Made by a program: the position numbers and the translations under genes
Sequence record: MK514281.1
Direction: 5' to 3' (one strand)
DNA: 64,000 nucleotides
The notes under the pieces: model-generated
The model's input: only the letters and a program-made list of their open reading frames with translations
The model's database searches: none
Told to the model about the DNA's origin: nothing
In this document: in pieces, positions 9,257-22,717 of the stretch
How the letters are laid out: every line of letters starts with the position of its first letter
Position numbering within the stretch: position 1 is the stretch's first letter

Positions 9257-10093
9257 ATGCACTTACTTGATAGTCCTGACGTTTGGATGCCCATACCTGG
9301 ATTCTCACGTTACGAGATCAATGAGGTAGGTGTAGTCAGGAATTGGAATAAACAAATCATTAGCCAATCTAAATGGGGTGATTACTTAAAGGTTGTTATT
9401 GCGGCCGATGACGGCGAACAGCGGATGATCATGGTCCATGTTGCGCTATGCCTCGCCTTCCATGGCAAGCGTCCCGATCTAGGTCCTAATGTTCTAGTAG
9501 TAACAGTAAACCATAAAGACGGTAATAAAGAAAACAATACCAAATCTAATGTCGAGTGGGTGTCTAACTCAGACAACGTGTTACATGCCTATAAGACTCG
9601 TCTTAACAAGACATCTCAGCATGTGTTGATCGATGATGAGTTAACCGGCGAGCGATTCTCGGTACATTCTTACGAAGAGCTTATGCGCTGGGTCGGTAGT
9701 CCTCATTTGAAAGGCCGAATCTTTTGTAGCATATACCGAGACAAACTTTATCAAGATAGATATCGAATCACCGAATTACCTGGTTATGAACCAGGGTCAG
9801 GTGCGGCGGCAGCTATTCAGATTAAAGTGTTCGATATTGCGGCAAAGCATAATTTACGGAAGAGCGCATATGACGGCTATGTATTTGGCAGCGTCGATGA
9901 AGCTTCCGGAATGTTAAGTTTGAGTGTGTCGCGTATAAAAACGATATTAAGGCTGGGTAACCTGATTTTATTCAACGGTTACCTTTTCATGAAAGCTAAC
10001 GATATGCGAACTATACCTGGTTTCACTAAAGAACAAGTGGAAAAGTCACTTCGCATATTTAAAGCAAAACAACGACGTAAGAACATTTACTAA
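9257..10093 (+). mobile_element. Free-standing NUMOD4-HNH homing endonuclease
   Basis: WMPIPGFSRYEI (NUMOD4), VNHKDGNKENN..SNVEW (HNH), C-terminal FGSVDEAS NUMOD1-like element; appears more AT-rich than its neighbours. Confidence 0.88.
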
Positions 10094-10106: not shown

Positions 10107-11243
10107 ATGCAGTACAGTACTTTCAACCAGAATAAAGTTGACTATCTCCAAGAACCAATGTTCTTTGGTGAAGCCGTGTCTGTTTCTCGCTACGACCAAC
10201 AGCGTTATGAAATCTTTGAAAAATTGATCGAGAAACAACACAGTTTCTTCTGGCGTGAGATTGAGGTCGATGTGTCTAAGGATCGTATTGATTTCAATAC
10301 AAAGCTCACCGACAGTGAAAAACACATCTTCATCAGCAATTTGAAATACCAAACCCTGCTGGACTCGATTCAGGGTCGCAGTCCTAACGTGGCATTCCTG
10401 CCGATCTGTTCTATCCCGGAACTCGAAACCTGGATGGAAACCTGGTCGTTCTCTGAAACGATCCACTCGCGCTCATACACCCACATCATCCGTAATGTGT
10501 TCAATGAACCAGGGGTGGTGTTTGATGATATCGTCACTAACGAACACATCAAAGCCCGCGCAGCATCAGCAACCAAATACTACGATGAGTTGATTGAACT
10601 CACGTCTTACTGGAATCTGTTGGGTGAAGGCACTCACGTGGTCAACGGTAAGAAAGTCGTGGTTAGTCTTCGTGCACTGAAACGCCTGCTATTTCTCTGT
10701 ATGGTGTCTGTTAACGCATTAGAAGCTGTTCGTTTCTATGTGTCGTTCGCCTGTTCATTTGCCTTTGCTGAACGTGAGTTGATGGAAGGCAATGCCAAGA
10801 TCATTAAACTGATCGCCCGCGATGAAGCCCTGCACCTGACCGGCACTCAGTACATGATCAATCTCTTGAAGTCTGGCGAAGATGATGCTGAGATGGCGGA
10901 GATCGTTAAAGAGTGCTGGAAGGAAGCCTGGGACATTTTTGTCGAAGTTGCCGAACAAGAGAAAGATTGGGCAGCTTACTTGTTCCAGGACGGCGGAATG
11001 ATTGGTCTGACGGAGAAGGTGATCGTTCAATATATTGAATATATCACTAACGTCCGCATGCGGGCTATCGGAATGGATATTCCATTCCCTAACGCCACCA
11101 GTAATCCAATCCCATGGATCAACTCCTGGCTGGTCTCTGACAACGTACAGGTGGCTCCACAGGAAACAGAAATTACATCCTATCTGGTCGGTCAGATCGA
11201 CTCGAAAGTGGACGCCAACGATTTCGACGATTTCCAACTGTAA
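10107..11243 (+). CDS. nrdB: Ribonucleotide reductase class Ia beta subunit
   Basis: [27 protein letters not shown] and [11 protein letters not shown] motifs; close to the E. coli type. Confidence 0.97.
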
Positions 11244-19471: not shown

Positions 19472-19620
19472 TCAATCATATACGTAAAGGGGTCTGGCGA
19501 AAGCCATATCCCTTTTGGTTATGCTGTCTTTTTTTTGGTTAAGAAATACTAGCCTTCTCCATTATATGCAATTTACACGATACACTTTTCTATTTATTAC
19601 ATCAGCAAGAGAGATAAGAC

Positions 19621-19764
19621 ATGAGCGCACCTGAAGAATTTGATATGGACGGCCTGGAATCACTGGATCTGGAAGGCGCTGAGAAAGCGGCAGAAGAGAA
19701 AGCAGCCGGCGGTGGCGAAGCCCTGTCTGATGGCGAAGCAGATTGCGAAGGTTGCAAGATCTAA
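19621..19764 (+). CDS. 47-aa acidic peptide ending in CxxCKI (NrdA C-terminal tail-like), not in the ORF track
   Basis: MSAPEEFDMDGLESLDLEGAEKAAEEKAAGGGEALSDGEADCEGCKI; purine-rich RBS AAGAGAG; upstream terminator and TATG. Confidence 0.8.
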   Translation: MSAPEEFDMDGLESLDLEGAEKAAEEKAAGGGEALSDGEADCEGCKI

Positions 19765-19817
19765 ATGCTGTGATGTGAATCGGGTCTGATATGGGATCAG
19801 TTAACCGAGGAAACATC

Positions 19818-20117
19818 ATGAACATCTATCTTGTCCAACGCAAATCAGAGCCCCGTTACACACCGGATTCATTTATCGCTGTTGCAACATCGACCGAAGA
19901 GGTGCTGATGATTCACCCTAGCTACTTTCAGGGAAAGAACACACCTGTGAAGTTTGACGAGGCAATGGCCGCCCTCTGGGCGAATGAGTTATCCGATCAG
20001 CCAATGGATCATCAATGGGTTACCGATAAGAACGAGCTCGAGGTCACCTATCTGGGTCAGGCTGCGATGGAGTTGACCGGCCCCACGATCATTGAGATGT
20101 GGTACGGGTACGCCTGA
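19818..20117 (+). CDS. Hypothetical protein
   Basis: GAGGA RBS before ATG at 19818; MNIYLV...DSFIAVA start; terminator at 20125-20150. Confidence 0.7.
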   Translation: MNIYLVQRKSEPRYTPDSFIAVATSTEEVLMIHPSYFQGKNTPVKFDEAMAALWANELSDQPMDHQWVTDKNELEVTYLGQAAMELTGPTIIEMWYGYA

Positions 20118-20257
20118 TCATACGGGGAGGCTTCGGCCTCCCTTTATGCCGGTCGTTATCCTATGACTTGTATTTGGCAGGTCTGAGGTGACGTATGTTT
20201 AAACGTTTCATGTTCTATCTGTTCAGTAAGTTATTTGACCATAAAGGGGAGTACACC

Positions 20258-20806
20258 ATGTCCGAAGCAGTGAAAGATCAGCAAAGCAATGATGTTAATG
20301 CAACCAACGATGTTGAGGTGCAGCCAACACCTGCTGAGACCTCTGCACCGGAACTGGCATCTAACGATGTGGTTGCCGCACCGGAAGCCGCAGGCGATGC
20401 CCGTCCTGAAGTCCAGGATACGGTAGAGTCGACGCCAGTGGTGATTGAGCCGGTTGCAGTTGCTGAACCATCCGCACCTGTCGTGGCACCTGCTCCTGTT
20501 GTTGTACCTGCGGCTGAGCCAGCTCCCGCACCTGTAGCACCGACCACCCCGACCGACAGCGATAAGACTGAAGGCGAACCCGATACCAATCGCTTCGACC
20601 ATCTGGCCAGTACTCTGAAGAGTTTACTTCAGGTAGCCGGTCATGAGCTCGACGAAGCATTTGACGATGCAGTACCTTTGGCAAAACAGATCGCTTCCAG
20701 TGACGAAGAGTTCGGTGACAAGCTGAAAGACATCCTTGTGGTTGTTGGTTGTGAATACGGCGAAGCTTTCCATCATTTCTTCAGCTATGCGAAGAAGCAC
20801 ATCTAA
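20258..20806 (+). CDS. Pro/Ala/Val-rich disordered protein with two C-terminal helical repeats
   Basis: GGGGAG RBS before ATG at 20258; LKSLLQVAGHELDEAFDDAVPLAK and LKDILVVVGCEYGEAFHHFFSYAK; terminator at 20815-20843. Confidence 0.7.
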   Translation: MSEAVKDQQSNDVNATNDVEVQPTPAETSAPELASNDVVAAPEAAGDARPEVQDTVESTPVVIEPVAVAEPSAPVVAPAPVVVPAAEPAPAPVAPTTPTDSDKTEGEPDTNRFDHLASTLKSLLQVAGHELDEAFDDAVPLAKQIASSDEEFGDKLKDILVVVGCEYGEAFHHFFSYAKKHI

Positions 20807-21850: not shown

Positions 21851-21934
21851 TCGCTACGAGGGGAGGTGTGATCACTCCCCTTTTATGCCGGGCGAGGAAT
21901 CGTATAGGTGCTTTTGCCAACGAGGAATCTTATC

Positions 21935-22717
21935 GTGTTTGAAATGCTTTTAGGCGGTAGTCCGAACGGGAACTTGCCATTTGGGCAGTTGTTAGCCAAA
22001 ACAACAACAGACTTTACAGTCCCTGCCGGAGTGACCGATATTTCCGGTGTTGCTATCGGTGGCGGCGGCGGGAACTCACGCGGCAATACCATTGGTGGGT
22101 CAGGGGGTGATTTGCGCTGGCGGAATCACATTGCCGTTATTCCAGGTGAAGTGCTGTCACTTATTACCGGTGTGGTAACAGCGGCTGGTAAACCGGGCAC
22201 CTCCAGTAAGATCATCCGTAAGTCAACCGGCGAAGTATTACTGATCGCTAAAGGCGGTGACTCCACCGATGTATCAACGCCGATCAATGGAGCTGATATA
22301 GGTGGAGGGAACGGCGGTGTTGGCACCAATCCATCAGGTGGTGGAGCTGGCGGGTATACCGGCAATGGCGGTAAAGGTGGTTCAGCTGCCGATGTTGACT
22401 CTGGCGGTGGTGGCGGTGGTAGCTCTTATACCTTCAGCGGAAACAGTTTTGGTTGTGGCGGTGGGGGCATCTACCCTAACGGCAAAGGCGCTGATGGTGG
22501 TGCGCCGCCTGTCAATACCGGCAGTCAGGCATTTGGTGGCAGAGGGGGTTCTGGTGGTAATCCTGGTCAAAACACGAATGGGGGCTTATACGGCGGTGGT
22601 GCTGGCGCACCCATTAGGATAACCTATGCAACAACAGGGACTGCTGGCTGCATCCGACTCATTTGGGGTTCAGGTCGCGCCTTCCCAGCTACGAAGACTG
22701 CAGATATTACAGCTTAA
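21935..22717 (+). CDS. Glycine-rich virion fibre/decoration protein (MFEML family)
   Basis: GTG start after GAGGAA; FTVPAGV..IS.VAIGGGG ... IRLIWG.GRAFP. Confidence 0.75.
   Translation: MFEMLLGGSPNGNLPFGQLLAKTTTDFTVPAGVTDISGVAIGGGGGNSRGNTIGGSGGDLRWRNHIAVIPGEVLSLITGVVTAAGKPGTSSKIIRKSTGEVLLIAKGGDSTDVSTPINGADIGGGNGGVGTNPSGGGAGGYTGNGGKGGSAADVDSGGGGGGSSYTFSGNSFGCGGGGIYPNGKGADGGAPPVNTGSQAFGGRGGSGGNPGQNTNGGLYGGGAGAPIRITYATTGTAGCIRLIWGSGRAFPATKTADITA

Follow-up and report, generated by a model that had tools for sequence, protein, structure and literature searches.

gp108 and the signals around it

The DNA analysed here (the window) comprises 64,000 nucleotides of the genome of Erwinia phage Rebecca, bases 62001-126000 of MK514281.1. 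The gene under study is gp108, an open reading frame (ORF) on the plus strand at positions 19621..19764 of the window. Rebecca is an Agricanvirus and encodes chimallin, the shell protein of the phage nucleus (Pfam Chimallin_Phikzvirus). The product of gp108 is an acidic peptide of 47 residues plus stop (15 D/E and 3 K), belonging to family phrog_10239, and its C-terminus resembles the redox-active tail of NrdA, the alpha subunit of class Ia ribonucleotide reductase (RNR). The ORF had been singled out in a first-pass annotation made from the sequence alone, and it is present on the plus strand with the translation quoted there. The same annotation considered the gene to be missing from the list of ORFs; the public record does carry it as REBECCA_108, though only under the label of hypothetical protein.

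Comparison with related sequences showed that gp108 is a real coding gene under purifying selection. The peptide is 98-100% identical in all Agricanvirus records and 74.5% identical in AH06, and the ratio of nonsynonymous to synonymous changes (pN/pS), determined against AH06 and two metagenomic relatives, ranged from 0.26 to 0.45. Within the last eight codons every change found among the relatives was synonymous. The phrog_10239 profile matched gp108 from end to end (residues 1-47 on positions 1-47 of 47, E = 9.3e-30). Neither Pfam (E <= 1) nor NCBIfam assigned a family to gp108 or to its bacterial homologue described below, and an Rfam scan of the gp108 region gave nothing relevant. A search of PDB sequences with gp108 returned a single match, dismissed as chance (E = 9.9).

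The region upstream of the gene carries several signals. Directly after gp107, a hairpin with a GAAA loop is found at 19486..19516 on the plus strand, with a folding energy of -22 kcal/mol and z = -3.5 relative to shuffled sequence, and T runs follow at 19513-19516 and 19529-19536. The hairpin is conserved in AH06 and in two further contigs (L043, L055). It probably terminates transcription of the gene before it, in which case gp108 would be transcribed as a unit of its own. Simple consensus scans for terminators and promoters called none upstream of gp108; the terminator claimed in the first-pass annotation is nevertheless made likely by the stable hairpin and the T runs at 19486-19536. Between this element and the gene lies an intergenic box, ATTATATGCAATTT, at 19561..19574 (plus strand), with the conserved core ATTATATG at 19561-19568. 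The box is conserved in four relatives and is a candidate phage promoter element; no second copy was found in the window, so it is not a recurrent motif at that length. A purine-rich ribosome-binding region at 19608..19619 (plus strand) directly precedes the ATG. It had been pointed out before and is indeed visible in the sequence and conserved in the relatives.

Three parts could be distinguished in the peptide. The N-terminal acidic and hydrophobic motif, residues 5-18 (E-E-F-D-M-D-G-L-E-S-L-D-L-E, 19633..19674, plus strand), has the core F-D-[ILM]-D..L, conserved in both the phage and the bacterial members of the family. A central helix covering residues 17-30 (19669..19710, plus strand) was predicted by AlphaFold2 from a 37-sequence alignment (A3), and the C-terminal tail, residues 39-47 (E-A-D-C-E-G-C-K-I, 19735..19761, plus strand), contains the pair Cys42/Cys45 and, at the free C-terminus, K-I. 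The AlphaFold2 model is of low confidence, with a mean predicted local distance difference test (pLDDT) score of 65 and values of 52-58 over the last 17 residues, and everything except the helix is predicted to be flexible. Such a model fits a disordered peptide that would fold on a partner. A likeness of the N-terminal motif to the C-terminal tail of NrdB, the beta subunit of RNR, was seen by eye; it had no statistical support and was kept as a lead only. A zinc-ribbon or rubredoxin-like site needs two CxxC pairs per chain, and gp108 has one.

The NrdA-type tail and the peptide family

The tail was searched for in viral contigs as DNA encoding D-C-E-G-C-K-I-stop, which gave 92 loci. Real matches, genuine NrdAs among them, made up 35 of these. 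The other 57 (IMG/VR sequences ending L-V-F-T-Y-L-D-C-E-G-C-K-I) turned out to be antisense shadow ORFs and were discarded as chance matches to the pattern. These shadow ORFs (L068:2391-2792 and 56 others) are 133-134 residues long and run antisense to a 173-residue gene, the product of which appears by eye, from its translation only, to be an antirepressor of the KilA-N type.

The last seven residues of gp108 and the stop are the exact end of phage NrdAs of 752-761 residues (L097, L060), which carry the domains Ribonuc_red_lgC and Ribonuc_red_lgN and, in L097, also an ATP-cone. One group of NrdAs with the D-C-E-G-C-K-I end belongs to RB43-like T4-type phages of Klebsiella, Enterobacter, Citrobacter and Cronobacter. 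The bacterial NrdAs examined (E. coli, Erwinia pyrifoliae, E. tracheiphila, E. rhapontici and Pantoea) have 761 residues and end in ...DDGCESGACKI. They share with gp108 the acidic run, a cysteine pair spaced by small residues and the end C-K-I. In 48 sampled phage NrdA tails the same layout was seen: an acidic run, C, two or four small residues, C, [K/T/R], [I/L/V] and the end of the protein. The peptide claimed to resemble the NrdA redox tail thus has a terminal heptapeptide and stop identical to those of phage NrdAs and close to the E. coli and Erwinia ending. The pairwise comparison of gp108 with a phage NrdA tail gave E = 2e-4.

Among the homologues of gp108, which were recovered without use of the tail pattern, 64 of 68 end in C-x(2-4)-C-[KSM]-[IL], and the remaining four look like miscalled ORFs. 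The endings found in the family are CEGCKI, CEGGGCKI, CEGGACKI, CESGACSI, CGGACSI and CESGGCMI, and the two cysteines together with the last two residues form its best-conserved part. Conservation of the cysteines had been named as a check in the first-pass annotation, and its outcome agrees with the resemblance proposed there. In the whole Rebecca genome only one of 1810 six-frame ORFs ends in such a tail motif. Because of this rarity and of the exact heptapeptide end in phage NrdAs, the likeness of gp108 to the NrdA tail, as judged from sequence, is beyond chance. The features of a class Ia NrdA tail found in gp108 are a C-x2-C pair two residues from the C-terminus, the following K-I and, in front, an acidic linker predicted to be disordered. 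The RNR catalytic barrel (Ribonuc_red_lgC) was not found in the 47-residue ORF, which has its own start and no Pfam match. Since it has no barrel and its own start codon, and since no NrdA-like sequence occurs in the genome, gp108 is not classed as an NrdA.

A further tail was noticed in an NrdA-like protein (L147) of the metagenome-assembled genome 'Candidatus Scybalousia', which ends in ...IFDLLDGMVEVEEEDCEGCKI. There, F-D-L-L-D-G stands before the cysteine pair and is reminiscent of the N-terminal motif shared by the peptides, which hints that more of the module than its end may be present in some NrdA tails.

Scanning of bacterial genomes with the tail pattern gave at least 120 matches. 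These could not be taken as host NrdAs: 118 of the 120 matches listed are a chromosomal peptide of about 43 residues, and the tail of host-type NrdA is Cx4C. Among the matches listed, the peptide occurs in Pantoea, Erwinia, Serratia, Sodalis, Tatumella, Mixta, Izhakiella, Hafnia, Budvicia, Rouxiella and relatives; Erwinia carriers were confirmed in E. pyrifoliae, Erwinia sp. Ejp617 and E. piriflorinigrans. gp108 and the 43-residue peptide align end to end with 55% identity over 42 residues (BLASTP, E = 8e-9). By this sequence relationship gp108 is a homologue of an uncharacterised chromosomal peptide, labelled 'hypothetical protein' in every source (e.g. CAY73984.1). Both have the F-D-[ILM]-D motif, an A-E..A..K helix and the end E-A-D-C-E-G-C-K-I (alignment A3), whereas E-V-P-x-D-L of the bacterial form is replaced by G-G-G-E-A-L in the phage form. 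In Erwinia the peptide gene is situated between yedI (DUF808) and yodC (DUF2158), and in Serratia it follows ylaC. At the syntenic site of E. coli, yedI and yodC are adjacent and the peptide is absent from the spacer (L272). Upstream of the bacterial genes, -10-like elements of the usual kind were seen, and no operator that they obviously have in common.

In other phages the module was found both as a short ORF, in Erwinia phages Wellington and Kwan and Pantoea phages AAM37 and PSKM, and as the C-terminal 40-45 residues of longer acidic proteins, in Erwinia phages pEa_SNUABM_5, Y3 and Yoloswag. These longer proteins match phrog_10239 through their C-terminal 40 residues. Members with a Cx4C tail (P0008, P0012, P0018, P0019 and P0023-P0025, ending CEGGGCKI, CESGACSI, CESGGCMI or CEGGACKI) were also present, and in some of them the module ends proteins of 160-296 residues with unrelated N-terminal parts. 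In total, the module occurs in at least four unrelated phage lineages. The phage copies usually lie among genes of nucleotide metabolism: MazG and thymidine kinase genes are near gp108, dCMP deaminase and thymidylate synthase genes near the pEa_SNUABM_5 homologue, and a MazG gene near the Wellington homologue. The first-pass annotation had thus recognised the NrdA-like peptide, but missed its homologue on host chromosomes, the module in unrelated phages and the conserved N-terminal motif.

The last eight residues also occur without the rest of the module. gp049 of Erwinia phage vB_EamP-S6 (74.7 kb; L087:5055-5408), a Phage_gp49_66-domain protein, has the end D-D-C-E-G-C-K-I and its gene adjoins that of a dUTPase; further proteins with this domain and this end were found in L046, L065, L077, L091 and L037. 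The bare tail also ends proteins of 71 and 87 residues and proteins of 127-296 residues with differing N-terminal parts.

Genes for maturases of ribosomally synthesized and post-translationally modified peptides (RiPPs) were looked for beside the phage and bacterial copies. None was found: gp106, gp107 and gp109-gp111 have no Pfam family, and the bacterial neighbours are yedI, yodC, ylaC and transporters without conservation across genera. gp109 (19791-20117, 108 residues) starts 27 bases after gp108, has a strong ribosome-binding site of its own and is kept together with gp108 only within Agricanvirus-like contigs. The product of gp110 (20195-20806) has a long low-complexity centre rich in Pro, Ala, Val and Glu, and that of gp112 (21908-22717) is glycine-rich, with long G-G-x-G-G runs.

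Ribonucleotide reductase genes of Rebecca and possible action of gp108

The only RNR gene of the phage is nrdB (gp91), located at 10107..11243 on the plus strand (Pfam Ribonuc_red_sm, E = 2e-48). Its product is 74% identical to E. coli NrdB (BLASTP), and the alpha-binding tail at the C-terminus is retained. No match was obtained when the whole 273.7-kb Rebecca genome was searched by tblastn with three NrdAs (E. coli and two phage proteins), and NrdB is the only RNR entry in the Rebecca annotation. The three largest unannotated Rebecca proteins, considered as a hidden NrdA, proved to be a DNA polymerase, chimallin and an internal head protein. The statement that nrdB lies upstream and that nrdA is absent from the window was therefore correct, and the absence extends to the whole genome. 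In a comparative paper the RNR beta subunit, and not alpha, is listed among the jumbo-phage soft-core genes (PMC11448039). The simplest reading of the Rebecca sequences is that phage NrdB would pair with host NrdA, through which it is a candidate functional partner of gp108. Among the six-frame ORFs of Rebecca none resembles a glutaredoxin or thioredoxin.

Directly upstream of nrdB, an HNH endonuclease gene is found at 9257-10093. The two genes are reported to occur in the opposite order in some Agricanvirus genomes (PMC6690015), which suggests that the HNH gene encodes a mobile homing endonuclease.

Because the phage makes neither NrdA nor a redoxin, gp108 must work on host components, and its probable target is the host enzyme that supplies the building blocks of DNA. 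In class Ia RNR the NrdA tail reduces the active-site disulfide after each turnover and is re-reduced by thioredoxin or glutaredoxin (PMC4078304; PMC9669993). The tail features kept in gp108, together with the lack of NrdA and redoxin in the phage, argue that C-x-x-C-K-I-COOH engages the partners of the NrdA tail, i.e. the active-site channel of NrdA and/or thioredoxin 1 and glutaredoxin 1, and we regard this as somewhat favoured. More tentatively, gp108 as a whole may be a free-standing copy of the NrdA redox tail joined to a short acidic docking segment, a description that falls a little short of an even chance. What it would do there is a comparably tentative matter, and a diffusible dithiol shuttle acting in trans on host NrdA is the form of action we propose. 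All binding and redox steps are inferred. Dithiol gp108 would enter the active site of host NrdA, reduce the disulfide left by each turnover and leave as the disulfide, to be re-reduced by host thioredoxin or glutaredoxin. Abundant gp108 would in this way add tails in trans and speed up the regeneration of NrdA. It would also complement the extra NrdB supplied by the phage, so that more deoxynucleoside triphosphates (dNTPs) could be drawn from a limited pool of host NrdA.

A number of observations weigh against such a role. Host-type NrdA (E. coli, Erwinia, Pantoea) keeps a complete Cx4C tail of its own, so that the need for a second tail is an argument and not an observation, and the spacing in gp108 is CxxC. 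The similarity between gp108 and NrdA spans only 7-16 residues, the chromosomal Erwinia homologue matched the E. coli NrdA tail with E = 0.12 only, and a profile search of 1.84 billion proteins gave no match of NrdA length. As strict similarity is this short and the profile reached no NrdA-length protein, common descent of the tail with NrdA is plausible but not proven, and the data would be explained equally well by convergence on a shared partner. The conserved N-terminal motif of the family is left unexplained. No RNR gene lies near the chromosomal peptide at the loci examined (yedI-yodC and ylaC), and Pantoea phage AAM37, a 50-kb myovirus, carries the module and has neither NrdA nor NrdB. 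The fusion of the bare eight-residue tail to Phage_gp49_66-domain proteins and other domains is easier to reconcile with a docking tag than with a shuttle. Finally, gp108 is absent from the proteome list of lysates of the phages RAY and Deimos-Minion.

Some of these points could be taken to mean that gp108 has nothing to do with RNR. CxxC is a common metal-binding motif, and an acidic protein of this kind could bind metal between two chains or sense thiol redox, its likeness to NrdA being convergent. The shortness of the shared segment and the lack of RNR linkage in bacterial chromosomes would be expected in that case. The complete heptapeptide with its stop is, however, identical to the end of true NrdAs, and the variants CESGAC-S-I, CEGGGC-K-I and CEGGAC-K-I track NrdA tails, including the two residues past the second cysteine. 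Together with the position of the phage copies among nucleotide-metabolism genes, this makes a peptide unrelated to RNR rather unlikely. The peptide could also act on the reductase in the opposite sense, as a mimic that fills the tail site of NrdA or ties up thioredoxin and glutaredoxin, so that regeneration of RNR is slowed or re-routed, much as Sml1, a small disordered protein, does in yeast; the host copy would then serve regulation, and the phage copy would manipulate the redox state or dNTP supply of the host. The tail evidence would be the same, a regulator would fit the location of the chromosomal homologue outside RNR operons and the presence of the peptide in a phage with no RNR gene at all, and a CxxC tail in place of the host Cx4C might bind and yet shuttle poorly. 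A phage with NrdB and no NrdA nevertheless depends on the activity of host NrdA, the neighbouring genes all point to more DNA precursors and not to fewer, and the CxxC tails of phage NrdAs are presumably functional shuttles in the enzymes that bear them. We therefore consider a brake or decoy unlikely. A similarly low probability is given to the C-terminal (D/E)-D-C-E-G-C-K-I being a tag that recruits its carrier to NrdA or to a redoxin, with the free peptide as a minimal carrier or a competitor. The otherwise unrelated proteins ending in the eight residues (Phage_gp49_66-domain proteins and those of 71, 87 and 127-296 residues) speak for a tag, but two invariant cysteines would be unnecessary for it, and the conservation of the N-terminal motif indicates that the free form exceeds one.

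Two further proposals of the first-pass annotation were refuted or found no support. One was that gp108, as a detached tail, makes up for the missing tail of a phage NrdA, to which a leftover exon of a split nrdA may be added. RNR genes in pieces do exist in phages, as in the Aeh1 RNR gene with its HNH homing endonuclease (PMC6690015), and an HNH endonuclease adjoins nrdB in Rebecca. With no NrdA-like sequence in the 273.7-kb genome for any of the three NrdA queries, full-length host-type NrdAs that have their own tail, no redoxin-like ORF in the phage, and a ribosome-binding site, a start codon and a preceding terminator belonging to gp108 itself, this reading is refuted for the Rebecca genome. 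The other proposal, that gp108 is a substrate of the prohead protease packaged in the virion, started from a G-L-E/S site in the peptide. The motif [S/A/G]-x-E occurs six times in the Glu-rich gp108 by composition, so the site is not specific, and bacterial chromosomes as well as small phages of other types carry homologues. gp108 was also not in the mass-spectrometry list of RAY and Deimos-Minion lysates (PMC6690015), although short acidic peptides are easily missed. A virion role is not supported and is given a very low probability.

Relation to known systems

Taken together, it appears about an even chance that a hitherto unrecognised trans-acting component of class Ia RNR is encoded by Enterobacterales such as those of the Erwinia, Pantoea and Serratia type, and by many of the phages that infect them. 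This would be a free tail peptide of 40-50 residues, acting as shuttle or regulator, captured repeatedly by phages and with its last eight residues grafted onto other proteins, to control dNTP synthesis of the host; in Agricanvirus it would go together with a phage NrdB for which there is no phage NrdA. If so, a separately encoded conserved tail would be a new player in the control of DNA-precursor synthesis, and it would help to explain how a jumbo phage with NrdB only uses the large subunit of its host. The absence from the syntenic locus of E. coli may be the reason why the peptide went unnoticed.

The cysteine tail of RNR alpha is textbook knowledge, though known only as a part of the enzyme. 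What is new here is a family of free-standing genes for tail-like peptides common to bacteria and phages. A search of full texts for the tail strings returned no paper, and the literature searches made turned up none that describes an RNR tail with a gene of its own. Pfam and NCBIfam contain no model of the peptide family, and its PHROGs entry has no function: gp108 is a full-length member of phrog_10239, a family without described function. The chromosomal 43-residue peptide differs from the phage form in its surroundings, being placed at yedI-yodC or after ylaC and not among nucleotide-metabolism genes.

With the class Ia NrdA tail, gp108 has in common an acidic flexible segment, a cysteine pair spaced by 2 or 4 residues and K-I at the C-terminus, the last seven residues being identical to phage NrdA. 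It differs in being a gene of its own with no catalytic domain, and in having the additional F-D-x-D..L motif and a helix. The split nrdA of Aeromonas phage Aeh1, which is interrupted by the mobE homing endonuclease (cited in PMC6690015), is similar in that separate phage polypeptides supply parts of RNR function. There, however, the catalytic halves are neighbouring genes, whereas Rebecca encodes a tail only and no catalytic alpha.

Small disordered regulators of the RNR large subunit are represented by Sml1 of yeast and Spd1 of fission yeast, and Sml1 is reported to compete with the CX2C tail of Rnr1. No sequence relationship connects them with gp108 (no Pfam family at E <= 1), and Sml1 has no tail-like cysteine pair. 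Like them, however, gp108 would be a small disordered protein acting on the tail-dependent regeneration of RNR alpha, and a functional analogy to Sml1 and Spd1 is possible.

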